This document shows, in pieces, positions 1-52,449 of a stretch of DNA of 64,000 bases (position 1 is its first letter; each line of letters starts with the position of its first letter). This DNA comes from Diplonema japonicum. Taxonomy: Eukaryota > Protista > Euglenozoa: Diplonemea. Under the pieces are notes generated by a model. The model had not been told where the DNA came from and ran no database searches. It saw only the letters and a list, made by a program, of their open reading frames with translations. The stretch spans positions 248,001 to 312,000 of the forward strand of contig OZ025743.1 in NCBI GenBank assembly GCA_964019335.1, in the 5' to 3' direction. Made by a program: the position numbers and the translations under genes.

Positions 1-1600
1 GGGGCCAAGCCTCGAGGTGGACGATGGCGGAAGGGACCATGTAGGCGGGGAGCTTGGAGTCGAGGAGTGTGTTGACAGAGGGAGCGGCGTCGGCGTCGGC
101 CGTGTGCCCCCTCGCGATCACGTAGGCGACGATCCTCTTGTCCCCAGGGATGTCCTCCCTGACGAGACACAGAACGTCCGCTGTCTCTGGGTGCTGGCGA
201 ATCACGTTTTCGATCTCCCCGAGCTCGATCCTGAACCCCCTGATCTTCACCTGGAAGTCCACCCGCCCGATGTACTCCACCGTCCCGTCCGCGAGCCACC
301 GCCCCACGTCCCCGGTCTTGTACAGCCGCCCGCCCTTCCCGGCCGCTCCGAACGGGTCCGCCACGAACCTCTGCGCCGTCAGCCGCGGTTGGTTCTGGTA
401 CCCCCGCGCCAGCTGGTACTTGCCCCCGACGTGCAGCTCCCCACACACCCCGAGGGGCACCGGTTCCATCGCCTCGTTCAACAGGTACATCGTGAAGTCC
501 TTCAGCGGGGTTCCGATGTTGCTCTGGAAGGCCCGCGACATCACCTCCTCCGTGATCTCCTTGATCGTCACGTGAACAGTTGTCTCTGTGATCCCGTACA
601 TGTTCACCAACCGGGGCTGCTTGTACCCGAACCTCTCGAACCACTCCTTCAGGTTAGCCAGTTCCAACTTCTCTCCCCCGAAGACCACGTACCTCACTTG
701 TAGTTCTTTCTTCTTCTTCTTCTTCTCCTTCTTCCCCTCCTCCTCCTCCTGTCCTTCCCCGAGAGCGTAAGGAATGAGTTGGTAGAAAGCAGAGGGTGTC
801 TGGTTCAACACCGTCACCCCCTCATCCACGAGGAGCTCGTAGAAGTCGGGTGGGGATCGAGACACCAAATACGGAACAACCACAAGCTTCCCCCCGTAGC
901 AGAGGGCCCCGTACAGTTCCCAGACACTGAAGTCGAAGGCGGAGCTGTGAAACATCGTCCAGCAGTCCCGTTCTCCGAACCCGTAGAATTCCTCCGATGC
1001 CCGCAGCAGGTGCACCACGTTTCGGTGGCAGATGAAGATCCCCTTCGGCCTTCCTGTGGAACCGGAGGTGAAGATGATGTAGCACAGGTTCTTGCTTGTC
1101 GCCTCCCTCTTCTTTGGGGCAGCTTCCTCCATCACTCCGCTTCCGCTGTTCTCTCCCTCCCCGCCCTTCTCCATGTAGAAGAGCTCTCCCTTGAAGTCGA
1201 GCTCGGCGAGGGCGGCCTTGTGCTCCTCCCGCGTCACCACGTACATCATTTTGCAGTCCTCGATCATGTAGGCGAGGCGGTCCTGCGGGTAGGTCACGTC
1301 CAACGGGATGTACCCTCCCCCTGCCTTCAGGACTGCCATGATCCCCACCACCAGCTCAAGGGACCTCTCCACGTACACCCCTACCAGTACGTCGGGACCC
1401 ACCCCCGCTCTTTTCAGGTGGGCAGCCACACGAGACGCCGCAACGTCCAGCTCCTTGTACGTCAGGCGTTCTCCTCCGTACACCACAGCCGTCCGCTCCC
1501 CGTGCGCCGCAACGCACTTCTCGAACATCCCGTGAAGCGTCTCGTCGCACTCCACATCCTCCTGACGGTCGTTCCACTCCACCAGCATCTGGTGCTGCTC
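1..1600. repeat. Dispersed direct repeat: Thr A domain, copy of 32008-33607
   Basis: Identical shadow ORFs at offset 32007 (138..575 vs 32145..32582; 822..1085 vs 32829..33092). Confidence 0.95.
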
Positions 1601-2915
1601 AACTTTGCTAAGCATAGAGACTGTCGCGTACGGTGCCATCGGTGAGTCAAGAAGGGAGCCGCACAGGTTGATGAAGTGATTCAACATGCGCGACGCCGTT
1701 TCCCTGTGGAACAGGTCGGTGTTGAACTCCAGAGTGAGCTCGTACCCCGTAAGGCGCTCCAAAGCGTTCAGCGTGATGTCGAACTTGCTGATCGTGTTCC
1801 TCGTGTCCACGAAGGACAGCAACAAGTCGTCGCCCAGTTGAGGGTCCATGGGAACGTCTTGCAGAACGAAGCACGCTTGGAACAGAGGGTTGCGGGAGAG
1901 GTCGCGGGCAGGTTGCACGATGTCGACGACCTGCTCAAAGGGAATGTCTCGGTGGGTGTATGCCTTGATGCAGGTGTCCTTTACAATTGTCAAAAGGTCC
2001 TCGAAAGAGCACTTCCCGCTAGAGGCTACTCTGAACACCAAGGTGTTCACGAAGTCGCCCACGCACTTGCTTCCATCACGCCTGCCAACTATGGGCGATC
2101 CCACAGAAACATCGCTAGTGTTGCAATATCTGGACAACAGCACGTTGTACACAGTCAGCAGCGTCATGAAGGTGGTGCAGTTGTTGGCGCTCCCGAAGGC
2201 TTTTAGCCTGTCGGCCACTTCTCTGGGCAGCATCACAGTCACGGAATCGCCGTTGAACGTCTGTCTAGGAGGGCGTGTGAAGTCCAAAGGCAGCTCCAGC
2301 AGCGGTGCGTCAGCAAGGGCATTCTTCCAGTATTCTCCCTGTACCTGCAGCACACTCGGCAGCGCCTGCCGTTGCCATACGGCGTAGTCTGCGTACTGGT
2401 AAGGAAGCTCTTCTTCCTCGTCGGTTTTACCGTTGATCTCTTTGTAGTACCTCTGCGCCAGCTCCTCGACCAAAATGCCAACAGAAGAGCCGTCAGCAAT
2501 GATGTGGTGCACTACTAAGCAGAACACATGGTTTGCTTCTCCCTGTTTCACAAGGCAGCACTTGAACAGTGGGCCTTCAGAGAGACTGAACACGACCTCT
2601 GCTTCCTCTTGGATGATACCACGCAGAAGCTTGTCTTGCTGTCCTGCAGGCTCGGAGCTGATGTCAACGATGGAGAGAGGTGTCGACAGGGTGCATGCAT
2701 CAGATATGATCTGCTTTGGTCCATCGTCATGTTCTTCAAACGTGGTACGGAGGGATTCGTGACGTTCTACAAGGTACTTTACACAGCTCTGCAGCACGTT
2801 GACATCAAGGTGCCCTTCAAACCTCACAACAAGCGGTAGATTGTATGCAGCGCTGTTCGTCGATAGCTGCGACACAATCCACAATCTTTGCTGCGAGTAC
2901 GACACTGGCATCACT
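2..2915 (-). other. NRPS module 12 (partial): C(HHIIADG)-A Thr, cut by the window edge
   Basis: A domain matches module 2 (offset 32007 nt). Confidence 0.87.
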
Positions 2916-5900
2916 GTCCTCCCGTCCACGGTAGCCCTCTCCACATGCTGTACGCCAGCCACCATTCCTGTACCACCCTTTCTCACAAACCTCGCCATGC
3001 CCCTCACAGTCGGATCTTCATACAAGTCCTTCAGAGTCATGCTGCACTCATACGTCTCATTGATGTTCGTCACCAGCATCACCGCCATCAGCGATTGCCC
3101 GCCGATGCCGAAGAAGTCGTCGTCTCTCCCGACGTCCTCTCTCTGCAGCAAAGACTTCAGGATCTCTGCGATCTTCGTTTCCACACTTCCTTCAGGCACA
3201 GCATGTGAAGAAGACTTGCCTGCGTTCATCATCGCATGTCCATCCATGAGTGCCTTCCTGTCTACCTTCCCCGAAGTGTTCTTGGGAAGGGAAGAGAGGA
3301 AGAGGAAGAAGGAAGGGACCATGTAAGAGGGGAGAGAGGACTGGAGGGAGGAGCGAAGGGAGAGGATAAGCTCGTCCTCGTGGACTTGGTCCCGAGGGGC
3401 CTCCGCCAGAACGATGTAGGCGGCGATCGACGAGGATGCTTGTGACAGGGTGCAGCAGCAGTCTTTCACCTCCACTGCCTTTTGCTGACGAACAGCCCCC
3501 TCCACCTCCCCGAGCTCGATCCTGAAGCCACGAACCTTCACCTGGAAGTCCGCCCGACCGCAGAACACCACCCGCCCGTCCTCCTTGAACCTCCCAAGGT
3601 CCCCTGTCTTGTACATCCTGTCCTTCCCGCTGCTCCCGAAAGGGTCCTTCTTGAAACTCTCCGAGGTGAGGTCCGCCCGACCCACGTAGCCACGGGACAC
3701 CTGAGGACCCCCGATCCAGATCATCCCGGTTGCTCCAACAGGGCACAGCTTCCTCTCAGAGTCGAGGATTCGAACCCTCGTGTTCGGGAGAGCCCGCCCG
3801 ATCCCCATCGCCACTTCCGTGTCGTCAGATAGGTCCCCCCGCTTGAAGGTCTCGCAGGTCACCTCCACACAGGTCTCCGTCGGGCCGTAGCAATTGTGGA
3901 ACACCGTGTCGTCCCTCGCCCCGGTCATCCACCTCCGAGCCACCTCCGCAGAAGCCGCCTCCCCTCCCGAGTGGATCCTCTTCAGATCCCGAAGCCCCGT
4001 CCCTTCCACGGATCGCATCACAGAGGGGGTGAGGAACACGCTCTCCACACGCTGTACCTCCAAGAAGTCACGGAGCCCGCTGGTCCTCTCCTCACCGACA
4101 GCCATCGCGAGCCTTGCCCCACCGCACAGGGCGCACAACGTGTCCATCACACTGATGTCGAAGGTGTAGGCGTAGAACTGCAGAGTCCTCTCCCCTTCAC
4201 GTCCCACCACGCGTCCCTCCGTTCCCTTCAGAAGGTTCCACAGGTTCCTCTGTTCCACCACCACACCCTTCGGCTTCCCAGTCGACCCTGATGTGAACAG
4301 GCAGTAGGCCGCAGAGCCTCCCTCCACACAGCCTCTCTTCACCTTCAGTTCTTCAGAAGGAATGTCTTCTTCTTCTTCTTCTTCTTCCCCGCTTCTTCGT
4401 GTGTACAGAACCTGTACCCCGTCCTCCAAGAAGGAGTCACACCCACCGACAGGGCCGTTGCTCACCACCACTCGCACCCCACTGCTCTTCGCCATGTACC
4501 GAAGACGCTCCTCAGGGAGCGACGGGTCCAACGGGACGAACCCTGCCCCGCTCCGGAGGATCCCCACAGTTCCGGTGATCACCTCCGTCGAGCGCGTGCA
4601 GTGGAGACCCACCAACAGCTCCCCTTCGCCGTCCCGCCTCTTCTCCAGCAGTTCCCATGCCACTCTCCGGCTCCTCCTCTCGAGTTCGCCGTAAGTTACT
4701 GCTTCCGTCTCGCAGGTTACTGCAATCTCGTCCTTCGCCTCCTCCATCCTCTCCTCCAGTGCCTCCACAACGTTCCCTTCCCCGAAGTCAACTTCGTTGC
4801 TGTTCCACTCCACAAGGAGTCGGCGCGTGTCTTCAGGGTCAATGACAGAGATGTCTGAGATGAAAACTGCGGGGCTGGAGACAGAGGACTCAACTAGGGT
4901 CTTGAGCGACCGGAGGAGCCGGAGTGCTGTGGCCTCGTCAAAGAGGTCAGTGTTGTACTCAAGTGCAATGCAATGGGCAGCTTCCTGCTTCGTAACATTG
5001 AAAGTGAGGTCCATCTTCGCCACAATATCCTCCTGTTCAATACGTGTTAGCTTGAGCTGCGCATCGACATCGGCAGCAGGTGACGGCGTAGTAGAAATGT
5101 TAAGCAGCACCTGGAAGATCGGGTTACGGCTTAGGTCACGCACAGGGCTGATGGTGTCGACCAGCCTCTCGAAGGGGTAGTCAGAGTGGGTCAGTGCTTG
5201 GAGACAGATCTCCTTGCTCTTTGCAAAGAAGGCCTCAACAGTGTCGGTCGGTGTAACGTTGAAACGCAGCGCAAGTGTATTGACGAAGAACCCAATGAGG
5301 GCCTCTGCCTGAGGGAGCAGTCTGCAAGACACGGGCGTCCCAATCACGACATCAGTGCTTCCTGAGAACTTACTCACCAACACGCTCAAACAGCTTTGCA
5401 GCAGCATGAACAGTGTCAGTCCGTATTTCCCACAAGCGCTCTCTACGATGCAGGTATCAACATCGACACTCACCACCGCTCCGTTGAAGGTCTGCACGGC
5501 GCCTCGAGGACGGTCCGTAGGGATCTCAGTCGTAGGCAGCCCTGTGTCTTGCAAGAGGTGCTCCGTCCAGTACTTGCTCATGACGTCCAGCTTCTGTTCT
5601 GTGAAGGTAGTGCGTTCCCACAACGCGTACGTTCTGTACTGTGTGGTAAGAGGTGGTAGACGCTCGCCTGCGTATAGCCTGCAGAGCTCCGACACGAAAA
5701 TGGAGCTCGACCATGCATCGGTGATGATGTGGTGAAGACTGACTTCAAGATGCCATTTTGCTTCGGCTTGGTTCACAACCTTCACCTCGTATAGCGGGTA
5801 CCTTGATAACATGAACTTCGCGTTTCTGGTATCATCGGCGATCCTTGTCGTGCTCGACACCTCGTCGTAGCCAAGCACCTTCTGCACCACCTTACCTCCA

Positions 5901-8900
5901 GCGATCGTAAACACGGTTCTAAGCGACTCGTGCCTGTCCACCAGCTGCTTCAAGGCGTCTTCCAAGCGCTTCACTTCCAGACTGCCCTGTACCTCAAATA
6001 CGTCCGTCATCCTGTAAGCTTCTGCATCGGACTCGATCTGATCAAGCATGTAAATCCTCTGCATGGCAAAGGTAAGCGGTGCGTCATCTGCACTGGGTTC
6101 CATATCTTCAATCTTTGGTAGAGCTGCTTTGGGTGCCTTCACAACAGCAGTGGCCATGTCAGCAAGGACAGGGTGTTCGAAGACTGTCCTGATGGACAGC
6201 TCGACACCAAGGAGCTTCCTCACCTTCGAGACCAGTCTGGTTGCGGAGATGCTGTCTCCTCCAAAGGAGAAGAAGTCTGAGCCCCTCCCGGCCTTGCTGT
6301 TCCCTCCGAGGACCTCCTCCCATGCGGAGGCGAGACCCTTCTCCACTGCCCCGCGAGGCTCTTCGAACTCCTCCCCGTCTTCTTCAACAGGGACGGGAAG
6401 ACGCTTCCTGTCAACCTTCCCTGCCGCCGACAAGGGAAAGCTCTCCATCCGCACCAGTACGGACGGGACCATGTAGGCAGGAAGTGCCTTCTGTGCCTGT
6501 GACGTCACCGCCTCTCTCCACTCCTCCCCTGCACCAGAGGACTCCTCCTTCTCCTCCTCCAGCACAAAATAGGCAACGAGCCTCTTCTGCCCAGGAAGAT
6601 CCTCTCGCACCACAACAGCGACTTCCACGACACCAGCGACCCTGCTGAGGACAGCCTCCACCTCCCCGAGCTCGATGCGAAGGCCTCGAAGCTTCACCTG
6701 GAAGTCCATCCTCCCACAGAACACGACTTCCCCAGTCTCCAGGCGCCTCCCCAGGTCCCCGCTGAGGTACATCCTCCCACACCCAGGGCTTTTCCCGAGG
6801 GGGAACGGGTCCGCCACAAACTTCTGTGCCGTGAGCCTCGCGTCCCCGACGTAGCCGCGTGCCACCTGAACCCCACCGAAGGCGATCTGCCCCACCACCC
6901 CGGGGCCCACAGCCGCCATCCGCTTGTCCACCACGTAGCACAGAACATTCCTCAGAGGCATCCCGATGGGAACAGGCCCGCCGCCAAGGAGGCGTACCCG
7001 CTCCAAAGCCGCCCCGTCCCTCTCGAACACGAATGCGTTCGTCGACACGCTCACCTCCGTCGGACCGTACGAGTTGATGAGCCTCACCCCTGCTCCCATG
7101 CACCTCTCCACCTGCACCAACGGGAGCTCCTCTCCCATCGCCGCAATCGTGCGAAGCCGGGGGAACACTCTCTTCCCTTGTTCTTCTGTTGAAAGTTGTG
7201 TTTGCTCATCCTTCTCTCCTCCTCCCCCGTTGTTGAAGAAGGGGAGGCCCGCGAGCACCGACGGAGACAGCTGGCACATTTCCACCCTCTCCTTCGCAAG
7301 AAGGGCCGCGAGGTCCTCCCCAAGAGGCTGCCTCGACCCTTCCCCGAAGACAAGGGTGCCCCCTTGCAGCAAGGCAAGGAACACCTCGCTGATCGACGCA
7401 TCGAAGGTGAACGACGCGAACTCCAGAACCCGCGCCCCTTCCCCGGGGGCGAATCGCTCTCCCTCACCGTAGATGAAGCTGCACAGCCCAGCGTGCTCGA
7501 TCTGTACCCCTTTCGGTTTCCCTGTCGACCCTGAGGTGTAGATCACGTAGGCAAGGTCTTTCTCGGACAGGTCCCCCTCGCCTTTGCTTGAAGAGACCTG
7601 CTGCGCCCCTCCCTTCTGCTCCTTCATCATCTCCTCAGCTGCCAGAACCTGAACAGAGGAATCAGCAGAGAGGCGCTCCGCCACCTGCGTCCTGTCATCC
7701 TTCAGACACACCACAACCTGCATCCCGATGTCTTCCATGATGTACAGGAGCCTCTCCGAGGGGATGTCTCTTGCCAGCGGGACGTACACGGCCTCTCCTC
7801 GCCAGCATCCGAGCATCGCCACCAGTGCAAGGAGGGAGCGGTCCATGAGGACACCGACAGCCCCGCCCTTTCGAACACCGGCCTCCCGGAGCCCTGCCCC
7901 CACGCGGCCGACCAACTCTTCAAGCCTTCCGTAGGTCACCAGGTCTTCTCCGCACTGCACCGCCACGCTGTCAGGCCTCTCCATGCTCATCTCCTTCACG
8001 ATCCTGTCCACTCGCTGCGTCTTGTAAGGCACCGACTCGTCCAGCTCGTTCCACCCCACAGTTACCTTCTGGTGCTCTTCAGGAGTCATCGTAGATAGAG
8101 ACCCAACAGGTGTGGAGGGATCACGCAAAATATCATCAAGAAGGATTTCCCACCTGCGAAGGAAGGCAGTGATGTCAGCGGCCTCGAAGAGGTCTGTGTT
8201 GTACTCACAGATGATGGTCGTGCCTGTCGATGTTTCTGCGGCTGTAAGCATCAAGTCGAACTTAGCGACAGTGCTCGGTACGTCAAAGGGCTCATAAGTA
8301 GTGCCCGAGGAGGGTGCCATGGACTTGGCTTCCATGTCGAACATGACTTGGAAGAGAGGGTTGCGGCTGGGGTCTCTTTGCGGCTGGACTAGCTGCACGA
8401 TGTCCTCGAAAGGCAGCATGGCGTGTGTGAAGATGTCGCTCACATCCTTCTTGACATCCGCCACAAGGTCCGAAAAGGGTTGCAGGGGATGGGACTTCGT
8501 CCTGTACACCACTGTGTTCATGAAGAAGCCTAGTACGTCTTGGATCTGGGGGTTCAGCCTGTTGGCCATGACACCGCCCACCATGACTTCGTCAACACCC
8601 GACCACTTGGCAAGCACTACGTGCAAGGACGCCAAAAGCATCTGATGAATTGTTACACCGAATTCTGTGCACAACTTGTTCAACCCTTGTGTCACGTCTG
8701 GCACGATGAGCATGTCGATGGAGCTCCCGTTGAAGGTTTGCACTGGCGGGCGTTTTTTATTCGAGATGTTGATTACAGGCAGGTCACCGGACAGGTACGA
8801 CTGCCAGAAGGACTTTGCCGAGTGCGGTCTGCACGCCTCACGATGCCACACGGCATAGTCGATGTACTGCACAGGTAGCGGTGGGAACTCAGGGGTGGTA

Positions 8901-11900
8901 CCCGAGAGGTATGCCTCGTAGCATGCAATAAGCTGTTGGATAAGCATTCCCATGGACCACCCATCGCCCACAATGTGGTGAAGCGTCAGCAGCAGCAGCT
9001 GATCGATACCGTTGGTGGCGGTCTTCACACGAAGAAGAGGTGCTGTCGCAAGATCGAAGCACTGCTGTGCCTCCACCCTGGCTGTGGACAAAAGATCTTC
9101 GGTGTGGATGGTCTCGACCGGGCACAGCACAGGACCTTCGGCAACTACCTGCTGCGGCTGCTCAGTGCTGCTTTCAATGAAGTACGTCCTGAGCGACTCG
9201 TGTCTGTCCAACATCGCATCCACCGCACGCTGCAGTACCGGAACGTTGATTTTGCTACCTACCTTCACTGCAAAGGGCAAGTTGTATGCAGCCGACTCGC
9301 GGTCCATCATAGTCATGATGTAGATCTGGTGCTGCGCGGGGCTCAACGGGTACGGCACCGTGCGCTGCTCCAGCACAGCGATTTGCTCCTGTTCGAAGTC
9401 TGCCCCATCAGCGCCCAGCAGTTGGTCCGCTTTACATGCGATTGCCACAACAGAAGGGTCTGCAAAGAAGTCTTTGATGGGTACTTCAACACCTAAACGC
9501 ACTTTCAGCGCTGCAAGCAGCTTCACGGCAAGAAGCGAATGTCCCCCAAGGTTGAAGAACTTCCCGTTCCTCCCAACAGTGCAGCCCAGCAGGTCGGTGA
9601 AGACTTCCGCGACAATGCGCTCGGAATACGTTTCCGGAGGCTGGTAAGAGGCGGGGAGGACTGCGTCAGGGATGGGAAGGGCTTTCTTGTCGACCTTTCC
9701 TGCGGGGTTCAGAGGCATAGACTCGAGACACACGACGGCAGATGGTACCATGTGTACAGGAAGTGTTCCTGCTGCATGGGTAGTGATGGTGTCGGTGTCT
9801 GCGGTGCCAACAACGTACGCCACAATGCGCTTGTCGCCGGGCGTGTCCTCACGGACGATGCAGACACAGTCGGCGACGCCTTGGCAGGAGATCACCGCGG
9901 CCTCGATCTCCCCGAGCTCGATCCGGAACCCACGGATCTTCACCTGGTGGTCGATCCTTCCGACGAACTCAATATTACCATCACGCAAGTACCTCGCAAG
10001 GTCGCCCGTACGATACATCCTCTGCGAGGAGTCGAACGGTGATGTAGTAAATTTCTCCGCAGTCAACTCCGGCCTGTTCAGGTACCCACGAGTCACCTGG
10101 ATACCAGCTACACAGATCTCACCAGCAACACCGATCGGCTGCGGTGACGCGGTGGGCGACAAGATGTACAGGGATTGGTTGTGTGTGACCCTTCCGATAG
10201 GAACAAAGTGCTGCGGGGTGTTCGGGGTGACCTCGTAGTGAGTGGCCTCAATGGACGTCTCGGTGGGACCGTACAGGTTGAAGAACCTCCTGTTCATCAT
10301 CCAGCGCTGCCTGGCGGCAATGGAGCATGCCTCACCAGCAGTCACCATAGAATGCAGCATCGGCAACCCATCTGACGGCAGCACGGCAAGCAGCGATTGC
10401 GGCAGTAAGGCAGCAGTGACGCCCTGTCTGTTCATAATCCTGACCACGTTTTCTCCAAACAGGTCATCTTTTGTCGGCATCACAAGGGCACCTCCTGATC
10501 CAAGGCACATGAACACTTCCCACACAGAAGCGTCGAAGCTGAACGCTGCGAACTGTAAAACACGGTCACACGTTGTCCAGCCAAGGTTCACCCTGTTTGA
10601 ATACACCAGGTTGACGATGCCCTTGTGAGGGACAAGCACACCCTTCGGCTTCCCTGTCGACCCAGAGGTGTAGATCACGTAGGCGAGGTCCTCCTCGCTC
10701 ACGCTGGGCAGTTTCACGTCTCCTACCGTCGTGCTGCAAAACACCTCTTTCACATCAAGGCACCTCACTCCTTCTGGTACGGCAATCCCTGCCAACACTT
10801 CCTTGCTGCTTACTATAACCTTCATCCCCGAATCTTCTATCATGTACTCCAAGCGGTCCTTCGGGTAGTTCGGGTCCAGTGGGACGAATGCACCCCCCGC
10901 CTTCAGAACACCTAAAAGCATGGGTACCAGCTCGAGCGACTTAGGCAAGCAAAGGCCGACAAGTGTGTCGGGGGTGCTGACACCGTGAGCCACGAGATTG
11001 TGGGCGACACAAGTAGTAACTTGTTGGAGCCCCTCGTAGGTGTAGTGTTGGCCTTCGTATGAGAGGGCCACTGTGTCCGGGTGCTCTTCGGCTTCGTCTT
11101 GGAATATTTCGTGCAAAAGCTTCTGTTTGGGAAACGACATTTCACTGTCGTTCCACTCGTTGAGGAGAAGGTGGGTCTCCGAAGGGGTCAGCATTTGAAC
11201 ATTGCGAACCTTCTGATGCGGGTTCTTGAAGACGGCTCTGAGAAGCTCCTGGTAGTGTGCTCCCATCTGGGCGATGGTCTCCCTGTCAAATAGATCTGTG
11301 TTGTACTCCCAGTGGACCTTCACCCCTGCCGCCTCTTCGATGCAACTCACCGTCAGGTCGAACCTCGAGTGAGTCGTTTCCGTCTCGTACGGGGTGGCAT
11401 CTAGATGCCCCTTCTCCTCTGAGGAAGAAGACCCGTACGATGGGGTGTTCTGTAGAATGAACATGACTTGGAAGACGGGGTTCCTGCTCAGGTCTCTGTC
11501 AGGACGGAGTTCTTTGACAAGTTCTTCAAAAGGGAGGTTCGAGTTGGAAAAGGCCTCGAACGCCGTTGCCTTCACCTGCTGGAGCAGCTCCATGAACGTG
11601 GGATCGCCCTCCACCTTGCATCGCACCACAACGGTATTGATGAAGAATCCGATCAGCCCTTCAACAGCCTGCTGCACTCTGCCCGCAACAGGCGTACCCA
11701 ACACAATGTCGTCCTGACCAGAGTATCTCGACATCAGCATGTTGAAGACAGCCAACAGCACCACGTAGGTCGTTGATCCTGTTCGCTTGGCCAAGCTTGA
11801 GACCGACTGTGCTACTCCCGCAGGAATCAGAATGTCCAACGAGCTCCCGCTGTACTGCTGTATCGCAGGGCGGGGCCTGTCTGTTGGAAGCTGCAACGTG

Positions 11901-29900: not shown

Positions 29901-32900
29901 GTGTCCAGCTCGCAGCACCACACCCCGGGAGCCTCCGGGACGCGTCCCCTGCACCCTCCCTGCGTCAACACCACCCCTGCCTTGCAGTCGTTCATGATGT
30001 ACAGCGTCCTGTCCTTCGGGTAGCTCGGGTCCACAGGAACGTAGCAGCCCCCGGCCTTCATCACCCCCAGGATCCCCACAGCCATCTCCACACTCCTCTC
30101 CAGCATCAGCACCACGGGCACCTCCGGTCCCACCCCTCGCTGGTGCAGCACGTGCGCCACCTGGTTCGCCCGCTCCTCCAGCTCCCGCCCGCTCAGCACC
30201 CTGTTCTCGTCCGACACCGCCTTCGCGACAGGGTTTTCGTCCACAGCCGCTTCAAACAGCTCGTGCATGCATGGCGCACCGGGGAATTCCCTTGCTGTGT
30301 CATTCCACTCCACTAAGGTTTGGTGAAGCTCCTGAGGGGGAACTAGCGGACAGGTTTCGGGGTCGCAGTCAGGGTTTTCCGCAATGTGCGTGAGAAGTAC
30401 ATCAAACCTGTTCAACAACAACTGCATGGTGGCTGGCGCGAAGAGCTTTGTACAGAATTCCATGCTAAAGGTGTAGTCGCCCGACTGAGACTCTCGTGCG
30501 AAGAGGCACATGTCGAACCTGCTGACCTTCTGGTCGAAGTCATACATTGAAAAGGTAAGGTCGGACACATCGATCTTCTCGAAGGGCGCGTTCTGCAGCA
30601 CAAACATGACCTGGAAGAGAGGATTCCTGCTCATGTCCCTTTCAGGCTGCACTGCCTCAACGACCTTCTCGAAGGGAACGTCTTGGTTGGCATAAGCTCC
30701 TACGCAGGTCTTTCGCATCCTATGGACGAGCTCTTTGAAGGTGCCCGCCTTGGTAAGGTCGAGGCGCAGCGTGAGCGTGTTGACAAAGAGACCGATGAGG
30801 TTGTGCAGCTCGGTGCGGTTCCTGCCTGCGATGGGGGTACCGATGCAGATGTCCTGCTGATTACTGTAGCGTGACAACAGCACATTGAAGCAGGCGGCGA
30901 GCACCATGAATATGGTTGCGTTGCACGACCTTCCAATCAGCTTCAGCTTTTCCATCACGGCAGCCGGCACCACATGACGCACCACCGAACCCTCAAAGCT
31001 CTGCACACGCTTCCTCGGATAATCAGTAGGGAACTGCAACGTTGGGGCTTCTGCAAGAACAGTCTTCCAGTACTCTACTTGCTGATGAAGGGTGTCAGAC
31101 TTGGTGAGAGCAGTCTTTTGCCACAACGCGTAGTCGCCGTACTGCACAGGCAGCTGTGTCAAGCTTGGGGTGCGTCGTTCTTTGAGTGCTTTGTATATCT
31201 CGGTAACCTCTTCCACGAGGACGTTCAGGGACCACCCGTCCGACACGATGTGGTGCATGACCACCAAAAGCATCGAAAGCTCCTCTGTAATATTGTACAG
31301 CGTCACCTTCATCAAAGGCGCCTCGGCGAGGCTCATAACTACTTTGGAATCGGTCTCCAGCATGGTGTCAACCTGCGACATGTCCAGCCCTGCGTGCTGG
31401 AGGTCTTTGACGTCTACCTGTACTGTCTTGTCGGTAACTATTTGGATCAGGTTTTCGTCGGCATCCTGTCCAAACGAAGTCCTCAGCACTTCATGCCTTT
31501 CACACAACACTGTCATGACTTCTTGAAGGGTGTCGTTGTCCACACGGCCTGTCACCTTGACGGCGCCTGAGATGTTGTACACTCCCTGTAAATTCTTCCC
31601 ACCTTCAATCACTTCGATGAGCCACATCCGCTGCTGTGCGAACGAAGCGGGCAACAAGTCAGCACCAGACGCCCTCGGGGTCAGTTCAGGAAGGTCCGTG
31701 TGCAGCGCTTGCAGCTCTTCGATGATGCTTGCCACGTGCACGATGTCGGAGTGCTCGAAGAACTGCTTCAACGTCACTTCCACGCCGAACGTGTCCTTCA
31801 CAACACCCAGCAGCCTCACGGCAAGCAGCGAATGGCCACCCATATCAAAGAAGTCAGAGTCACGCGACACCCTCTCAACACCGAGCAGCGACGTGATGAT
31901 ACCCTCCAACATCTCCTCAGTGACACCTACAGGTTGAGTGTAGTCATCACCAACATCGATCTGCGGCTTTGGCAGTGCCCTCCTGTCAGTCTTCCCTTGT
32001 GCAGTGAGGGGCCAAGCCTCGAGGTGGACGATGGCGGAAGGGACCATGTAGGCGGGGAGCTTGGAGTCGAGGAGTGTGTTGACAGAGGGAGCGGCGTCGG
32101 CGTCGGCCGTGTGCCCCCTCGCGATCACGTAGGCGACGATCCTCTTGTCCCCAGGGATGTCCTCCCTGACGAGACACAGAACGTCCGCTGTCTCTGGGTG
32201 CTGGCGAATCACGTTTTCGATCTCCCCGAGCTCGATCCTGAACCCCCTGATCTTCACCTGGAAGTCCACCCGCCCGATGTACTCCACCGTCCCGTCCGCG
32301 AGCCACCGCCCCACGTCCCCGGTCTTGTACAGCCGCCCGCCCTTCCCGGCCGCTCCGAACGGGTCCGCCACGAACCTCTGCGCCGTCAGCCGCGGTTGGT
32401 TCTGGTACCCCCGCGCCAGCTGGTACTTGCCCCCGACGTGCAGCTCCCCACACACCCCGAGGGGCACCGGTTCCATCGCCTCGTTCAACAGGTACATCGT
32501 GAAGTCCTTCAGCGGGGTTCCGATGTTGCTCTGGAAGGCCCGCGACATCACCTCCTCCGTGATCTCCTTGATCGTCACGTGAACAGTTGTCTCTGTGATC
32601 CCGTACATGTTCACCAACCGGGGCTGCTTGTACCCGAACCTCTCGAACCACTCCTTCAGGTTAGCCAGTTCCAACTTCTCTCCCCCGAAGACCACGTACC
32701 TCACTTGTAGTTCTTTCTTCTTCTTCTTCTTCTCCTTCTTCCCCTCCTCCTCCTCCTGTCCTTCCCCGAGAGCGTAAGGAATGAGTTGGTAGAAAGCAGA
32801 GGGTGTCTGGTTCAACACCGTCACCCCCTCATCCACGAGGAGCTCGTAGAAGTCGGGTGGGGATCGAGACACCAAATACGGAACAACCACAAGCTTCCCC

Positions 32901-35900
32901 CCGTAGCAGAGGGCCCCGTACAGTTCCCAGACACTGAAGTCGAAGGCGGAGCTGTGAAACATCGTCCAGCAGTCCCGTTCTCCGAACCCGTAGAATTCCT
33001 CCGATGCCCGCAGCAGGTGCACCACGTTTCGGTGGCAGATGAAGATCCCCTTCGGCCTTCCTGTGGAACCGGAGGTGAAGATGATGTAGCACAGGTTCTT
33101 GCTTGTCGCCTCCCTCTTCTTTGGGGCAGCTTCCTCCATCACTCCGCTTCCGCTGTTCTCTCCCTCCCCGCCCTTCTCCATGTAGAAGAGCTCTCCCTTG
33201 AAGTCGAGCTCGGCGAGGGCGGCCTTGTGCTCCTCCCGCGTCACCACGTACATCATTTTGCAGTCCTCGATCATGTAGGCGAGGCGGTCCTGCGGGTAGG
33301 TCACGTCCAACGGGATGTACCCTCCCCCTGCCTTCAGGACTGCCATGATCCCCACCACCAGCTCAAGGGACCTCTCCACGTACACCCCTACCAGTACGTC
33401 GGGACCCACCCCCGCTCTTTTCAGGTGGGCAGCCACACGAGACGCCGCAACGTCCAGCTCCTTGTACGTCAGGCGTTCTCCTCCGTACACCACAGCCGTC
33501 CGCTCCCCGTGCGCCGCAACGCACTTCTCGAACATCCCGTGAAGCGTCTCGTCGCACTCCACATCCTCCTGACGGTCGTTCCACTCCACCAGCATCTGGT
33601 GCTGCTCCACCTTTGTGAGTATCTGAGCAGTGGTAACGTCCTGCACGGGTGAGCTGCTTAGACTGTCGCACAGGTTGGTGAAGTGCGAAAGCATCAAACT
33701 GGCAGTGCTCTCCCTAAAGAGGTCGGTGTTGTACTCCACATAAAGGTCGACAGACCCGTCTGTCCGGATAGTGGACCCGAAGACGAGATCGAACTTAGAG
33801 ATGTGCGTGTCGACGTCAAGCTGCGAGAGCTGCATGTCGGACAGCAGGGATGTGGTCTCGAGGGGTGGCTCATCATGCTGGACAAAAACAACCTGGAACA
33901 GAGGGTTGCGGGACATGTCACGTTCTGGCTGGATGGCCTCCACGAGTTTTTCGAAAGGCAGTTCCTGATGTGCCAGCGCGGACTCGACCGTTTGCTTGAT
34001 GTTGGTGATAACGTTGAGGAAGGACCCCGTCGCCGACATGCGCAGCACAACGGTGTTCACGAAGTCGCCGATCATTTCCTGGAACTCAGCACGGCTCCTG
34101 CCCGACACCGGTGAGCCCACCACGATGTCCTTCTGGTTGGAATACCTCGAAAGCAGCACGGTGAGGACCGCCAGCTGCAATACAAAAGGTGTTGCGGAGT
34201 GTTTCCTGCCCACATCCTGCAGCTTCTTGAATACGCTCGCAGAGAGGGTACTCTTCACCCTGGCGCCGTTGAAGGTCTGCAAGGGGGGGCGTTGAAAGTC
34301 AGTGGGAAGCTCCAAGAGGGGAAGGTCGGCAAGAGTGTGCACCCAGTAGTCAGAAAGCGTCTTTAAGAATGTGGAGTCGGCAAGTCGCTCTCGTTGCCAA
34401 AGGGCGTAGTCGGAGTACTGCACGGACAGCGCAGGGAGTGAGAAGTTGTGTCTCTCCTGCATGGTTTTCATGCTGCTGTAGGCTTTCGCAATGTCTGCCA
34501 TGAAGACAAGCATGCTCCACCCGTCAAACACAGTGTGGTGAGACGTGATGACCAACACGTTGTCATCTTTGGCACACACCACCACCTGTGCCCTTAACAG
34601 AGGTGGTGCCGTCAGGTCGAACATCGTCCTCGCCTCTTTGCTCATCAGGTCCTGCATGAAGCTCGCGTTGTACCCTCCTGGGCAGTTGGTTACCCTTAGC
34701 TTCAACTCACAGCTTTCGATACGCTGGCAGGGCGGTGGCCCCTCGTGCAGGCCTGTTCTCAGCGCCTCGTGCTTCTCGAGTACCTTCTGCAAGCTGTCCT
34801 CCAGCAGGCCGATGTCCAGTTCGCCCTTGATCCTGACACCGCCAGGCATGTTGTAAGCCATGGCCCCCTTGTCGATGCGATCCACTACCCACAGCCTCTG
34901 CTGGGAGTACGACATTGGTGCTTCGCCGAGTCCTCGCTTTTCCACTTTGCTCGCGCTGCCTTGGCTTTGTTTCACGTACCCGGCCACGCCCTTAATGCTG
35001 GGATCCTTGAAGAGCTGCTTGAAAGGAACCTCTACCTGTAGTGTCCTAGTGATCAACCCAAGCAGTTGGACGGCTAGAAGCGAGTTTCCCCCGGCGCTGA
35101 AGAAGCTGTCCTTTACACCGATTCCGAATTTCAAAACTTCACCAAAGAGTTCTCCGATTTTCTGCTCCACCTCATCAAGTGGTTCTTCTAAATCATTGAC
35201 TGCAGTGGTAGGCGTTGGATCAGGGAGCGCCTTCCTGTCTACCTTCCCCGAAGTGTTCTTGGGAAGGGAAGAGAGGAAGAGGAAGAAGGAAGGGACCATG
35301 TAAGAGGGGAGAGAGGACTGGAGGGAGGAGCGGAGGGAGAGGATAAGCTCGTCCTCGTGGACTTGGTCCCGAGGGGCCTCCGCCAGAACGATGTAGGCGG
35401 CGATCGACGAGGATGCTTGTGACAGGGTGCAGCAGCAGTCTTTCACCTCCACTGCCTTTTGCTGACGAACAGCTCCCTCGACCTCCCCGAGCTCGATCCT
35501 GAAGCCACGAACCTTCACCTGGAAGTCCGCCCGACCGCAGAACACCACCCGCCCGTCCTCCTTGAACCTCCCAAGGTCCCCTGTCTTGTACATCCTGTCC
35601 TTCCCGCTGCTCCCGAAAGGGTCCTTCTTGAAACTCTCCGAGGTGAGGTCCGCCCGACCCACGTAGCCACGGGACACCTGAGGACCCCCGATCCAGATCA
35701 TCCCAGTTGCTCCAACAGGGCACAGCTTCCTCTCAGAGTCGAGGATTCGAACCCTCGTGTTCGGGAGAGCCCGCCCGATCCCCATCGCCACTTCCGTGTC
35801 GTCAGATAGGTCCCCCCGCTTGAAGGTCTCGCAGGTCACCTCCACACAGGTCTCCGTCGGGCCGTAGCAATTGTGGAACACCGTGTCGTCCCTCGCCCCG

Positions 35901-38900
35901 GTCATCCACCTCCGAGCCACCTCCGCAGAAGCCGCCTCCCCTCCCGAGTGGATCCTCTTCAGATCCCGAAGCCCCGTCCCTTCCACGGATCGCATCACAG
36001 AGGGGGTGAGGAACACGCTCTCCACACGCTGTACCTCCAAGAAGTCACGGAGCCCGCTGGTCCTCTCCTCACCGACAGCCATCGCGAGCCTTGCCCCACC
36101 GCACAGGGCGCACAACGTGTCCATCACACTGATGTCGAAGGTGTAGGCGTAGAACTGCAGAGTCCTCTCCCCTTCACGTCCCACCACGCGTCCCTCCGTT
36201 CCCTTCAGAAGGTTCCACAGGTTCCTCTGTTCCACCACCACACCCTTCGGCTTCCCAGTCGACCCTGATGTGAACAGGCAGTAGGCCGCAGAGCCTCCCT
36301 CCACACAGCCTCTCTTCACCTTCAGTTCTTCAGAAGGAATGTCTTCTTCTTCTTCTTCTTCTTCCCCGCTTCTTCGTGTGTACAGAACCTGTACCCCGTC
36401 CTCCAAGAAGGAGTCACACCCACCGACAGGGCCGTTGCTCACCACCACTCGCACCCCACTGCTCTTCGCCATGTACCGAAGACGCTCCTCAGGGAGCGAC
36501 GGGTCCAACGGGACGAACCCTGCCCCGCTCCGGAGGATCCCCACAGTTCCGGTGATCACCTCCGTCGAGCGCGTGCAGTGGAGACCCACCAACAGCTCCC
36601 CTTCGCCGTCCCGCCTCTTCTCCAGCAGTTCCCATGCCACTCTCCGGCTCCTCCTCTCGAGTTCGCCGTAAGTTACTGCTTCCGTCTCGCAGGTTACTGC
36701 AATCTCATCCCTCGCCTTTTCCATCCTCTCCTCCAGTGCCTCCACAACGTTCCCTTCCCCGAAGTCAGCCTCGTTGCTGTTCCACTCCACGAGAAGTCGG
36801 TGTCGCTCTGTTGCAGTGATCAACGACACATCGGTCAGGGGTAGCACGGTGTTAGCGACGACCTGCTCCAAGACGTTCTTGAGGCCCGACAAGAGGCGCT
36901 TGGCGGTGCTAGCCTTATAGAGGTCAGTGTTGTACTCCAACTGGAAATGGATCTCGTTGCCGACCTCCTGTGCGGTCATCGTCATGTCGAATTTGGAGGT
37001 GTAGGCAGGGGCGGGGAGCTGCGTGATGGTGCACGACCTGAGGGCGATGGGCTTGGTGGGGGCATTGCCGAGGATGAAGCATATCTGGAAGAGCGGATTG
37101 CGGCTGGTGTCACGCGGGAGGTTTAGCTCGTCAACCAGCTTCTCAAAAGGCAAGTCTTGATTCGTGAAAGAGTTCATGGAGTTCTCCTTCAGGGACGCAA
37201 CGAGGGCCTCGAAGCTCATGGACTGCACAACCTCCGCCCTTATGCAGACGGTGTTAATGAATAGGCCCAGCATTTGGGTCATTTCTTGCTCGGGCCTATT
37301 CAGAACAGGTGTTCCGATGGTAAGGTCGGTCTCGCCAGTCACCTTTGCAAGAACAGCTTTCCAAGCAGCCAGCAGGACTGTGAAGAGAGTCCCGTTCGTC
37401 TTCTTGACCAAGCTGCGCACACCGCTGGCAACTTTCTCGTTTACGACGATCCACTCAGCAGCGCCAGGCAGGGATAGAACCTCAGGACGCGGGTAGTCGG
37501 TGGGTACCACAGCTGGTGTAAACCCCTTCAAGGTCTTCTTCCAAAACAATGTCTGTTCCGCAAGCGCACCTGGACTGCTGTACCATATCCGCTGGCTGCA
37601 AGAGTAGTCGACGTACTGCAGCTTTGGGGGATGCACTGTATACGGTGTACCCAAGGACAGATTGTTGTAAATACGTGTGAACTCTGATATAAAATGCCTC
37701 AGCGACCACCCATCAGTGATGATGTGGTGCACGGCAAAGACGAGAAGGATATCGTCAGTGTCCTGGTGCAGCAGCGTCACACGGAAGAGAGGGAAGCAGC
37801 TGAGGTCGAAAGGCGTGACCGCCGCTGCCTTGAGGGATGCATCGAGGTTGTCGGTGTGTGTGTGCAGTACGTTGGGCGTGACCTCCAACCCACTGGCAGG
37901 GAGAACCTGCTGGTACGGGTTCCCGTCCTCGTCGTTAAAGACTGTCCGCAGCACTTCGTGTGCCTCAACAAGTATTTCCAAGCTTTTCTTCACTGCGGCA
38001 ACGTCGAGCACACCCCGCACGGAGCACATCGCATGCAGCACATAAGCTTCGCTGCCCTGCAACCTGTCCAGCACCCACATCCTCTGTTGCTGCACAGACA
38101 TTGTGTACCTTCCCACTTGGTTCCTCTTCGTCTGTCGTACCCGCATCCTTCCGGATCGCACCCTATCAGGGGATGCTTGTGTCGCATTTTGCTTTCTTGT
38201 GGTGCTCTCTTGCATGCTATGGATCGCCTTTGCAAGATCGCAGACTATGGGATATTTAAACAGCATTCCGGGGGAGATCGGGCTGCGCAACCCCATCCAC
38301 GTGCTGATGTCCTGCGCGATGGCGACCATGCTGATAGACTCGATCCCCAGGTCGGCCAAGCTCACGGAGGGGGAGACCAAGTCAGGCGTGGCAGCGTACA
38401 TTTTCAGCAATAAAAGCAGTTTCTGCGTCAGCTGCTCGAGCGTCTTCGTGCTGCGCGATTCGCTGACGGCAGTAGGGCTTCTCAGCACTGTGGTGACGCT
38501 CTTTTCAAATGCTTTCCAGTTGATCCAAGCGGCGGTGATGACCCCACCGTCGGAGCTCATCAGCCTGCTCAAGGCTGCCGTGGTCTGGTCCTGCGTGAAC
38601 TTCATGAGCCCGATGGAGGTAAGGGCGTCAACTGCTGACTTCCCTTCACGGGCCAGCATTCCAGTCTGGCCAAGGACACCCCAATGGACAACCAGGCAGG
38701 GAAGTCCAGCAGATTTCCTCACTGAGCACAAGCCGTCCAATGCGGCATTGGCTGCAGCGTAGCACAGCTGGCCTTGCATCGGGAGGCAAGCTGCCACCGA
38801 TCCAAAGCACACGAAGTGGTCCAGGTCGCAGTGCAGGGTCGCTTCGTGGAGGTGCATGGCAGCCATGACCTTTCCTGCGAAGGCGTTATCCAAGTTCTGC

Positions 38901-41900
38901 TTCTCAACACCTGAGAGCAAACCTTTCTCCAGCACGCCAGCTAGGTGGAAGATCCCCTTGATGCACGGCATGTCCATGGCTGTCATAAACAGCTTGTCGA
39001 CGTCTTCCCTCACAGACATGTCACCTTGGAACACAGCCACGCTCACTCCTTTATTCGCTCTCGCGTTGTTGATGGTCTTCTGCGACGCTGTGTCAGGTGC
39101 ACGTCGCCCCACAAGGACGATGTGCTTCGCGCCTCTGTTCACAGCCCATTTAAACACGGCCTGCCCGTACCCACCCAGACCGCCAGTGATGATGTACGTG
39201 CCTTCCTCGGCAAAGCTCACATCGGGAAGGGAGGGCAGCGTGAACCTTGTTGGGCTGGACAGCCGTGGCACCAATTTGCCGTCAGCCGTGAGCACAACCT
39301 CTGCCGAGCTGGGGTCATCAAAGTGGCACAGCACCTCCCATCCTGCTGTGTCCCATACAGAGCTCGACTGACTGCCGGGTACATCCAACACAGTGATGGG
39401 GTTCGGCAGCTCTTGCCTTGCTGCCCTTACAGCGCCCCACAAAGCACATCCAGCAGTCGCTTTATCGACTTCCGACAGGTCCCTCTGCGAGGCTTGAGAA
39501 CCTTGAGTAACAACGACCAGTGGGATGTCTTTTCGTTTTATGTCGGCGGCTAGCCACTTGAGCACGCCGAGCAAGCCACGAACGGCGTCTAGTGTGTCAC
39601 ACCAAGCGTAAACCAACATGCCCACCGGCCCCTTCAGTACGTCCCCTGTCGAGCCCATCGTGCATTGCATGAAGGAGTCGCGGTCCTTTAATGCTGTGCC
39701 CAAGGTGACGGTACGCACGTCAGTGCCGGCAGCTCGTAGGGAAGCAGAGAGGTGCTCGTCTGCCGAGTCGTAGACGTAAACAGGCATGTCGATGGGAGGA
39801 GGTGTCCTTCCAACGTAAGGTGCAGGAGTCCACTCCGTCTGCAGCAGCCACTCGTGCTCGAAGACGTCGTTCTGCGTGTGGCTGACGGGCTTGTGCTTAG
39901 TGACAGGGTCGGAGGGCTCCACCCAGAACCTTTTACTGTTCCATTGATAGGTGGGTAGCGACATAAACTTTCCCTTTGCGACGGGATCCCAGTTCACGTG
40001 CACGCCCTTGGACCACAGCCGACCAAGCTCTTCGAGGATCACCTGCTGCTCCGCCTGCTTGCGCTTCATGGACGACGCCACGATGATGCTTTGTTGCTGA
40101 GCCGCAGCGACTGTCGCAATATAGGGGGACATGGCTGTGTGCGGCCCGATCTCTACGAAGCACGACACTCTCTGCTTCAAGGACTCAACCACAGCCTCCT
40201 CAAACTTAACAGATGTGCAGAGCTGCTCACCCCAGTAGCCCGCGCTCTCCGGGACACCACCGGTTGTCAGGAACTTGCAGCAGCTGTCATGATGTGTGAC
40301 ACCCTCGGCGAGGACCAATGCAGTGACATCTTCCGAAACCTTTTGCATTGCGTGCGAGTGCAGCAGGATATTGCTTGGCAGGGTCCTCGTGTACAGGCCT
40401 TCGGCGTTCAGCTCTTCAAGCACAGCTGCGACGCTCTCTGGTGCCCCGCCGAAGGTCACGTCTGTCGGTGAGTTGTAAGCGGTGATATCAACATGCACCC
40501 CAGCAATGGAGCATGTCTCTTGCAGCTTTGCAGCACTGATGCCCACCGCCACCATGGTGCCCCGGGCTGCAAGAGAGAGAGCTTTGGCCCTGACCAGCAC
40601 AACCTTGGCGCCATCCTTGAGAGACAGCATCCCGCAGCACACTGCGGCAGCTACTTCACCGTGAGAGTGACCGATAACTAGATCAGGGGTGACGCCCCAC
40701 GACTTCCACAGTTTGGCGAGGGATACTTGCACAGCAAAGGTAGCAGCGTGGGCAAGGCCAGGGTCGCGGAGCTTGGCGGGGTTTGTCAGAATGTTGCTCG
40801 GGAGGTATTCAAGGACGCCTAGCGACTCGAAGACAGCCTCCACATCTTCCATTGCAGTTCGGAAGACCGCTTCGGTTTTCTGCAGCTCAGTGCCCATGCC
40901 TGCCCACTCGTTCCCAGCACCTGAGAACACAAAACCCACCTGCGGGCTGTTGACGGGTATCCTCTGAGGAGGGGCTTCCGCCTCGAGAAGCTTCTTCACC
41001 AACTCCTTCGCATCGCTCCCTACAACAGCGGTCCTGTACTCGTGATGTGTTCTGTACACGGAAGCTGTCCTGCACACGTCTGACAAATTATATATCTCGT
41101 CCGAGTCCAGCTTGCCGACCAGCGCACGAATGTTCGCGCCAAGTGCTTGCGAGCTCCTCCCCGACACTGGTAGGAGGTAGTTCCTCTTCACATCACCCAA
41201 TACTTCCACAGCAGGGCTCCCAGGAATGGCCTTTGGCGCCTCCGCAAGGCACAAAGCAGCCATGACACCATCGGGAGCGGCCAGACAGTGCACCAAACAT
41301 GCTCTTGCATCTAATGACAGCAGTTTCGTGGGTACGGTGAGACCATCTGTCACTGAAGAGGAAGGGGATGTGAAATGGATGGCAGCGGGCACTGCACAGT
41401 GATGGAGTGAAAGCGCCGCTTTGATAAGTCCAGCGACACCCTGAGCAGCACCCATGAAACCAAAGTTGTTGGAGGCTGTACCAAGGAACACGGGGTTTCC
41501 CTCTTCCAAGCAGAGTGCGGTGCGGATGGCCTCAGCCTCTTCCGCGTCGCAGCTGGGAACCCCTGTGGCGGATGTCTCAACGAAGGCGACGGCAGATGTC
41601 TCGACGGCGCTACGTGAAAGTGTCTGGGTGATGACCTTGACCCTGTCCTCGCGCTCTCGACCCGTCCCCGTGCACCCGCCTTTTATGGTGGCGTAGATTT
41701 TGTTGCCAGCCGCAATGGCATCCTGCAGAGGTCGTAGGATCACAATGCCGATACCCTCTCCAGGGAGCAACCCGGAGGCGGCTGCGTCGAAGGCTGCAGA
41801 GCGCTCGTCCGACGTGGACAGCAAACCTGCTGCTTTGTAAGCCTCGACCGTGGCGGAGTCGAGGTGGAGCTGCGCACCGCCAGCAATAGCCATGGAGCAC

Positions 41901-48210: not shown

Positions 48211-48492
48211 TCAGCGGGATTTTTTGATCTTTCGCAAGGCATGGGAGAGTGTTGATAATTTTGTCTTGTATGCATCAGTGGCATGGGAGAGAGAGTCGGT
48301 GAGGTTGATGTGCTGCTCCGTGAGTGTGTCGATCACACTCTTCATGTTGTTGCGCTCCAACTCCGATTGGGTGAAAAGGCTTTCGAACTTTTTTTTTTTT
48401 TTTCCTTCCCCTTCCTTCTGAAATACCTCTTGTTTTCGACTTATTTCCTCCCTCAGTTCTGCCGCAAGGTTCTCTATCTGAGTTCTGTGATG

Positions 48493-48541
<49 letters not shown>

Positions 48542-52356: not shown

Positions 52357-52402
52357 TCAATTTCTTTTTTATACACTCGAAAGAAAGAAGAAGGGTAAAG
52401 GG

Positions 52403-52440
<38 letters not shown>

Positions 52441-52449
52441 ACCCGATGT

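Follow-up and report, generated by a model that had tools for sequence, protein, structure and literature searches.

The largest contiguous nonribosomal peptide synthetase (NRPS), in the words of its own report, is SelB, the selethramide synthetase of Burkholderia, with 18 modules encoded in 59.9 kb and a mass of 2.2 MDa (PMC10589681). The kolossin synthetase of Photorhabdus, cited there, comprises 15 modules in 49.1 kb, for a mass of 1.8 MDa (PMC10589681). In a eukaryote, the peptaibol synthetase Tex1 of Trichoderma virens is encoded by approximately 62.8 kb and consists of a ketosynthase-acyltransferase-acyl carrier protein (KS-AT-ACP) start, 18 modules and a reductase (R) domain at the end (PMC11610996). 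Here, we describe a hybrid polyketide synthase (PKS)-NRPS megasynthetase gene that runs through and beyond a 64,000-nucleotide stretch of DNA (G000:C96:248001-312000, the window) in a genome of 62.5 Mb in 132 contigs and that is probably a genuine part of the nuclear genome of a diplonemid-type euglenozoan. In size, it equals or exceeds SelB and tex1, the closest in scale.

Both synthetases consist of one contiguous gene with 18 condensation-adenylation-thiolation (C-A-T) modules, exceed 2 MDa and carry bacterial-type LCL-like C domains, and both come with an MbtH-like helper in the genome and a Ser/Thr-rich product, here a predicted one. However, SelB is bacterial and its product, a cyclic lipodepsipeptide, contains D-residues and a 3-hydroxy fatty acid, whereas the present gene (64.0 kb, 2.35 MDa) is eukaryotic, begins with an eroded fatty acyl-AMP ligase (FAAL) and a PKS part with a dead KS, has no release domain in cis and no sign of epimerization, and the MbtH domain is fused to a thioesterase (TE) and unlinked. 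The kolossin synthetase is likewise a giant single-gene NRPS, but bacterial and of 15 modules. Tex1 resembles the present synthetase in being eukaryotic, in a gene length of about 63 kb and in a PKS-type loading module ahead of 18 NRPS modules. Tex1 is fungal and ends in a reductase domain; differently, the megasynthetase has no R domain, its KS is dead, it has an extra ketoreductase (KR) and a second ACP, and its named top relatives are bacterial. Neither the reductase nor the fungal-type domains that mark Tex1-type peptaibol synthetases are present. The N-terminal domain order and the hand-over from PKS to C domain are those of mycosubtilin/iturin- and puwainaphycin-type starters, bacterial FAAL-ACP-PKS-NRPS lines with an active FAAL and an active KS; in the present protein, neither domain retains its defining catalytic residues. 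Giant intronless bacterial-type megasynthases of protists include Cryptosporidium CpPKS1 and CpFAS1, Chlamydomonas PKS1 and the Prymnesium PKZILLAs, which are likewise megadalton and nuclear; but these are polyketide or fatty acid synthases, whereas the protein described here is essentially an NRPS and belongs to Euglenozoa, and a literature search found no relevant report on NRPS or polyketide work in diplonemids or Euglenozoa. What makes this gene unusual is a dead KS and a FAAL relic across two lineages (Hemistasia alignment, aa 461-1697), the lack of cis release and a homogenization limited to A domains.

The gene is a single open reading frame (ORF) of 63,993 bp on the minus strand (G000:C96:228271-292263), encoding 21,330 aa and a product of 2.35 MDa. 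Exact translation from the ATG at window position 44263 to position 2 yields 14,754 codons with zero stops, and, once 40 kb of the same contig are added, the frame continues for another 19.7 kb to a first stop after codon 21,330 (G000:C96:228271-228273). The window thus contains modules 1-11 whole plus C12-A12, and T12, modules 13-18 and a 127-aa tail lie beyond its start. A first-pass annotation of the window had pointed to a giant frame missing from its ORF list, and this is indeed the case: the ORF was not listed because the frame leaves the window. Its figures of more than 14,700 aa and at least 12 modules are right for the window but fall short as a gene size, which is 21,330 aa and 18 modules. 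The annotation had also proposed following the frame to its end, now located at the stop given above, and had named in-frame stops as grounds for abandoning the idea; exact translation finds none in the 21,330 codons. An independent six-frame Pfam search of the genome places 18 Condensation matches in the same open frame, which measures 21,455 aa from stop to stop. On the opposite strand across the gene, the longest open stretch is 459 codons.

The domain map, drawn from Pfam scans in 1,000-aa pieces and self-built profiles (Table 1), reads eroded FAAL-like domain, ACP, KS, AT, KR, ACP, 18 collinear C-A-T modules and the tail, with the 18 C-A(+A_C)-T repeats spanning aa 2051-21203. The HHxxxD active site is present in 18 of 18 C domains (C4 and C11 end in DA, C6 in DE). 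Core motifs A3, A5, A7, A8 and A10, the last with its Lys, are kept in every one of the 18 A domains by alignment (Pfam E 1e-42 to 1e-83), and all 18 T domains have the GGxS serine in collinear C-A-T order. A frame of 21,330 codons without a stop, together with 54 NRPS domains that all carry their catalytic motifs, requires long purifying selection. Two T domains, T6 (18935-19130) and T10 (6143-6340), carry the variant GGDSI, usual before epimerization (E) domains, and the other 16 are GGHSL-like; no E domain follows either.

The loading region combines intact and dead domains. The order FAAL-ACP-KS-AT-KR-ACP-NRPS, read at first pass, holds as an order, but the FAAL is an eroded relic and the KS lacks its catalytic residues. 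The requisites of a PKS module are otherwise found by Pfam and by reading of the motifs, namely the AT serine, the KR cofactor and Tyr motifs and the ACP serines. In a full-length residue alignment to 7zma and CurL (4mz0), the KS has Ser for the active-site Cys (DSGSSSS), Ser for the first His (ETSATG) and Phe for the second His (SNNFGF), which leaves nothing of the Cys-His-His set of a type I PKS elongation module. The highest-identity match to the N-terminal 2,050 aa is the EukProt transcript Hpha_TRINITY_DN11736 (1,339 aa, 39% identity, collinear over aa 461-1697) of Hemistasia phaeocysticola, an organism with a published transcriptome (PMC7052976). Its KS has Ala for the Cys (DTGASSS) and Ala for the first His (ETAAAG), and the AT active-site serine and the downstream Arg are both kept in this homologue as well. 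A dead KS common to the window and to a transcribed Hemistasia homologue at 39% identity is therefore an old and tolerated state.

How would the finished chain leave the enzyme? The first-pass annotation had asked for a TE, R or terminal condensation (CT) domain, but there is none in the gene (Pfam scans) and none adjoining it: PF00975, PF07993 and an extra PF00668 have no match near C96:226-229 kb, and no TE or R lies near the 3' end. The 127-aa C-terminal tail has no Pfam or Atlas match. With no cis release domain, release must therefore occur in trans. The best candidate for a trans helper or release enzyme is an unlinked 380-aa fusion ORF (G000:C3:15106-16248, minus strand), with an MbtH-like domain at aa 15-57 and a type II-like thioesterase at aa 132-370 (motifs GYSMG and GGHFF); it contains the sole clear MbtH domain in the genome. 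The genome search also found a free TE on C17, and three PF01648 matches elsewhere in the genome are candidate phosphopantetheinyl transferases (PPTases).

Beyond Euglenozoa, the nearest relatives are bacterial, as the first-pass annotation had supposed. A whole C-A-T module, with module 9 as the query, is 37-44% identical to proteins of cyanobacteria, myxobacteria, Acidobacteria and others, and the named matches are all bacterial. Matches to the PKS part other than that of Hemistasia are bacterial too (28-35% identity), and in a KS-AT tree the window and Hemistasia sequences are sisters (SH-aLRT, a Shimodaira-Hasegawa-like approximate likelihood ratio test, 100) on a long stem that separates them from 28 bacterial PKSs. 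With residues 1-2500 as the query, giant proteins of 5,500-17,500 aa are 26-36% identical to the megasynthetase, and nothing is closer than 36%. A metagenome scan with the window/Hemistasia alignment brought up relatives at 35% identity or less only. We infer that the gene goes back to an old hybrid PKS-NRPS of bacterial type, acquired before the divergence of the two euglenozoan lineages.

The further idea that several bacterial genes had been fused into one is not indicated by the C domains: in a FastTree analysis, all 18 group together, apart from 94 bacterial C domains (SH-like 98), and their position on one side of the branch fits internal module duplication. C2 pairs with C12 and C8 with C14, and these are modules with identical A domains. 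Pairwise identity is only 26-41% among C domains and 20-51% among T domains, except for T6 and T10 (92%), whereas five sets of A domains (1, 5 and 11; 2 and 12; 6 and 10; 8 and 14; 13 and 15) are 99-100% identical. The contrast between C and A domains suggests gene conversion that is restricted to A domains. At the DNA level, the identical sets form tracts of 1.6-1.9 kb at 95.5-99.7% identity. By our own conversion of coordinates to the domain map, each of these tracts begins no more than about ten residues from the C-domain end (…EWN motif) and runs on to the A-T linker, to the T serine or past T. Partial exchanges are visible as well. The A domains of modules 3 and 7 (87% identical overall) are identical for the first ~272 aligned columns and then divergent, with sharp edges, and that of module 17 (72% identical to that of module 13) has a module 13 core flanked by foreign N- and C-terminal parts; that of module 16 is 58% identical to that of module 3. 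This pattern suggests old internal duplications followed by continuing gene conversion limited to A, or A-T, units.

Substrate codes were read at the Stachelhaus positions from an alignment anchored on the FDxS, LPPS, GGE and NxYGPTE motifs, and Asp235 and Lys517 are present in 18 of 18 A domains. Compared with what we take to be the canonical Thr and Ser codes, the A domains of modules 2 and 12 (DFWNVGMVHK) are Thr-like, and those of modules 3 and 7 (DVWH[A/G]SLIEK) and 16 (DVAHWSLIEK) are Ser-like. The predicted product would be an 18-residue peptide built by 11 distinct A types, with the pattern X1-Thr-Ser*-X4-X1-X6-Ser*-X8-X9-X6-X1-Thr-X13-X8-X13-Ser*-X13-X18. Pfam scans of the whole ORF find no E or methyltransferase (MT) domain. 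Dual E/C domains were considered and rejected, as no HH[ILVM]xxxxGD motif occurs in the 18 C domains. Among solved structures, C1 and C9 match LCL-type domains (Txo1/2, TycC) best, and starter, fungal CT, E and heterocyclization (Cy) domains far more weakly; the fungal CT-type domain of TqaA is distant from C9 (1e-9). The peptide is probably all-L, because E domains and the dual E/C motif are missing and C1 and C9 are LCL-like by structure comparison.

We consider it likely that all of these features have a single explanation, a real nuclear diplonemid-type gene for an 18-module assembly line with a dead KS. A bacterial-type hybrid PKS-NRPS would have been acquired before the split of the two euglenozoan lineages, its modules would have multiplied within the gene, and A domains for the same residue would be held at 99-100% identity by gene conversion running from the C-A junction to or into the T domain. 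The protein, phosphopantetheinylated by one of the genome's PPTases, would then assemble the 18-residue peptide. The KS may serve as a mere scaffold, and any N-cap would be a small unit passed from the intact AT to ACP2, possibly reduced by KR and handed to C1. The chain would be released in trans, the C3 MbtH-thioesterase fusion being the best candidate. Several points weigh against this reading. The gene has no release domain in cis, and its 127-aa tail is without a match; two loading domains (FAAL-like and KS) are catalytically dead, and the enzyme could be impaired or differently used. The bacterial matches, spread over cyanobacteria, myxobacteria, Acidobacteria and others, point to no single donor lineage. 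The single clade of C domains comes from FastTree with long branches and odd composition, so that the grouping is suggestive only. Only the Thr-like and Ser-like codes resemble canonical ones, and the other eight A types do not. Finally, no RNA run of the source organism is among the runs on record for the stretch across the 5' junction of the gene.

It is possible to read some of these points as signs of an intact frame that encodes a non-producing or repurposed protein, either silent or making no free peptide: the KS triad and the FAAL P-loop are lost, no TE, R or CT is present in cis, and RNA runs of the organism are missing from the record. We judge this improbable. Such a protein would have to be reconciled with the long purifying selection that the unbroken frame and its 54 motif-bearing NRPS domains require, with the same dead KS in the transcribed Hemistasia homologue and with a genome that keeps PPTases and one MbtH-TE gene.

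Alternatively, the line could work as a classic lipopeptide synthetase, in which a fatty acid is activated and PKS-extended to give an N-(beta-hydroxyacyl) 18-mer. The order from the FAAL-like domain to the first C domain fits bacterial lipopeptide starters, AT, KR and both ACPs look intact, and the N-terminal domain is most closely related to FAALs. That domain has its best phmmer match at E 2.4e-9 among 1.84 billion proteins, with none below 1e-10, and its best Protein Data Bank (PDB) match at E 3e-4. Its top phmmer relatives (P0361, P0364, P0369 and P0371) match FAAL subfamily models of NCBIfam (whole-protein E 1e-93 to 1e-120) and align collinearly with it, which identifies FAAL descent. 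However, neither motifs nor scores place the domain itself among functional FAALs: the A3 P-loop is lost (QDNPG where TSGST is expected), A7 and A10 are unrecognizable, and NCBIfam scores of 19-29 bits fall far under every ANL cut-off (317-775). By descent and by the state of its motifs, the N-terminal domain is an eroded relic of a FAAL. Classic N-acylation by FAAL and KS is unlikely because the KS lacks all three catalytic residues. With no KS nucleophile here and Ala in its place in Hemistasia, Claisen chain extension by the KS is excluded on the residues present, and any N-cap would come from AT, KR and ACP2. Moreover, C1 does not group with starter C (Cs) domains of the lipoinitiation kind. 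Its best PDB matches are Txo2, Txo1 and TycC (1e-69 to 1e-60, Txo2 at 1e-69), against 3e-6 for CDA-C1 and 7e-10 for RzmA-Cs among the starters. A working lipopeptide line of this type is therefore very unlikely.

Several observations indicate that the ORF belongs to the protist. It sits inside a contig of 374 kb. PCCA biotin carboxylase and ETF-alpha lie upstream of it, and downstream come a PDZ-protein kinase as the next gene (784 bp away) and a BCD1/CSD/CCCH protein. All neighbours examined are eukaryotic in type and on the same (minus) strand, which fits polycistronic gene arrays. Relative synonymous codon usage correlates with that of the pooled neighbours (r = 0.87), with a common preference for AGG, GGG, CTG and GTG, and GC at third codon positions is 0.71 against 0.53-0.69 in the neighbours. 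In-frame GAA/AAG microsatellite inserts lie inside A domains (window 32700-32760, 13900-13960, 24300-24340 and repeats of these); they encode loops such as E7 and EKKKKK and were copied along with the converted A-domain tracts. These K/E-rich inserts were also considered as hidden introns, a possibility rejected as they are in-frame GAA/AAG repeats without GT...AG ends.

Reading by eye, PCCA has four short GT...poly(A)...AG interruptions (~54482, 54314, 52953 and 52704), and host introns look tiny and A-rich. Runs of at least eight A occur once in the 64-kb ORF, compared with 2-19 in each 4 kb of flanking sequence, so that this intron hallmark is absent from the ORF. The first-pass annotation, which had described a frame without introns beside intron-containing eukaryotic housekeeping genes, four introns being counted in PCCA, agrees with PCCA and ETF-alpha as they stand upstream. 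Its central claim, one intronless hybrid PKS-NRPS frame in a euglenozoan, gains from the sister transcript in Hemistasia and from the motif CAGTTTCTGTACTNTATTGGT, which we take to be a kinetoplastid/diplonemid-type spliced leader and which has at least 241 matches in the genome against 0 for a reversed control. The spliced-leader exon reads ACCAACGATTCTAAAGCTACAGTTTCTGTACTTTATTG then GT. The 7-kb stretch over the 5' junction is present, at least in part, in sequencing runs from five studies, and the runs of three of the five, all of one organism (organism A), contain half or more of its sampled words. An assembly chimera or contaminant, in which a bacterial ORF from the culture became attached to protist sequence at about 44.3 kb, could account for the higher GC of the ORF (57% against 46-50% in flanking 2-kb windows) and for relatives outside Euglenozoa that are all bacterial, but is hardly credible for an ORF with eukaryotic same-strand genes on both sides, host-like codon preferences including AGG for Arg, microsatellite inserts, a diplonemid transcript with the same dead KS as nearest relative, no bacterial protein closer than 44% and a junction-spanning stretch at least half of which is present in the runs of those three studies.

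As side observations on the host, PCCA (window 52400-54900) and ETF-alpha (55700-56900) are split by very short GT...AG segments, mostly poly(A) of 11-43 A. The spliced-leader 3' end, each time followed by GT, occurs in at least 241 dispersed copies that differ in the sequence downstream. Many of these copies are found close to the end of a contig, and some form clusters (for example, C24:7176-45964).

Diplonemids are among the most abundant marine heterotrophic protists, and the gene predicts an undescribed 18-mer peptide from this ecologically abundant group. It indicates that a trans-splicing protist can retain an assembly line of bacterial type, enlarge it and adapt it to its own codon usage. 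Diverged C domains (26-41%) beside uniform A domains (99-100%), with sharp breakpoints at the C-A junction, map the kind of exchange units sought by NRPS engineers, and with the dead KS and eroded FAAL the role of such scaffolds is open to test. Whether all this amounts to a conserved diplonemid natural-product pathway is a more doubtful matter. That pathway would unite the largest contiguous NRPS, an ecologically important 18-mer, initiation on a KS-dead PKS scaffold whose intact AT, KR and ACP supply or gate the N-cap, release in trans by the MbtH-TE fusion and a substrate code kept uniform by conversion, a combination that we regard as possible though rather speculative.

Table 1. Domains and modules of the megasynthetase within the window (window coordinates; residue numbers refer to the 21,330-aa product).
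Feature	Position	Strand	Description
Megasynthetase ORF, in-window part	1..44263	-	codons 1-14,754 and first base of codon 14,755
ANL/FAAL-like domain, eroded	42764..44263	-	aa 1 to ~500; Pfam AMP-binding E 6.9e-13, no significant stretch
ACP1	42497..42694	-	aa 524-589; PF00550 E 3.5e-12; GIDS serine present
KS, complete fold, no catalytic triad	41372..42439	-	aa 609-964; PF00109/PF02801
AT	40025..40933	-	aa 1111-1413; PF00698 E 7.6e-48; GHSHG serine and downstream Arg present
KR	38672..39202	-	aa 1688-1864; PF08659 E 7e-50; GGLGGYG cofactor motif, YAAAN tyrosine
ACP2	38222..38389	-	aa ~1959-2014; PF00550 21.6 bits against cut-off 20.8; GIES serine
Module 1, C1-A1-T1	34973..38113	-	A code DIMFHGCVEK; A1 99-100% identical to A5, A11; C1 LCL-like, not starter-type
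Module 2, C-A-T	31721..34927	-	A code DFWNVGMVHK, Thr-like; identical to A12
Module 3, C-A-T	28529..31657	-	A code DVWHASLIEK, Ser-like; A N-terminal half identical to A7
Module 4, C-A-T	25445..28462	-	A code DTMFIADVSK; C4 motif HHIIADA
Module 5, C-A-T	22214..25387	-	A5 same as A1, A11
Module 6, C-A-T	18935..22156	-	A code DASQAMSVSK; C6 HHAVSDE; T GGDSI; A-T DNA 99.7% identical to module 10
Module 7, C-A-T	15758..18874	-	A code DVWHGSLIEK, Ser-like; mosaic with A3
Module 8, C-A-T	12554..15691	-	A code DPLMVAACEK; identical to A14
Module 9, C-A-T	9434..12496	-	A code DAWLVALIEK; unique A domain; query for relatives
Module 10, C-A-T	6143..9358	-	A-T same as module 6
Module 11, C-A-T	2984..6088	-	A11 same as A1, A5
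Module 12, C12 and A12	1..2917	-	A12 Thr-like, identical to A2; T12 just beyond window start

Upstream of the gene, the minus strand of the window has long ORFs of 655, 842 and 2,229 aa (44735-46702, 48211-50739 and 57289-63978), in which no Pfam family is matched at E 1e-5. Elsewhere in the genome, an NRPS-like protein of 1,618 aa (G000:C94:66270-71126, minus strand) has the arrangement C*-A-T-R, with HRxxxDA in its C domain and the second His lost. It was considered as a nineteenth or releasing module of the line and rejected, as the C domain, having lost that His, is dead and the A domain shares only 26-30% identity with the A domains of the megasynthetase. At G000:C72:389317-395517, two thioesterase matches lie in long open frames, one of 1,952 aa and another of 2,611 aa that contains two stops, which suggests another PKS/NRPS-type locus.

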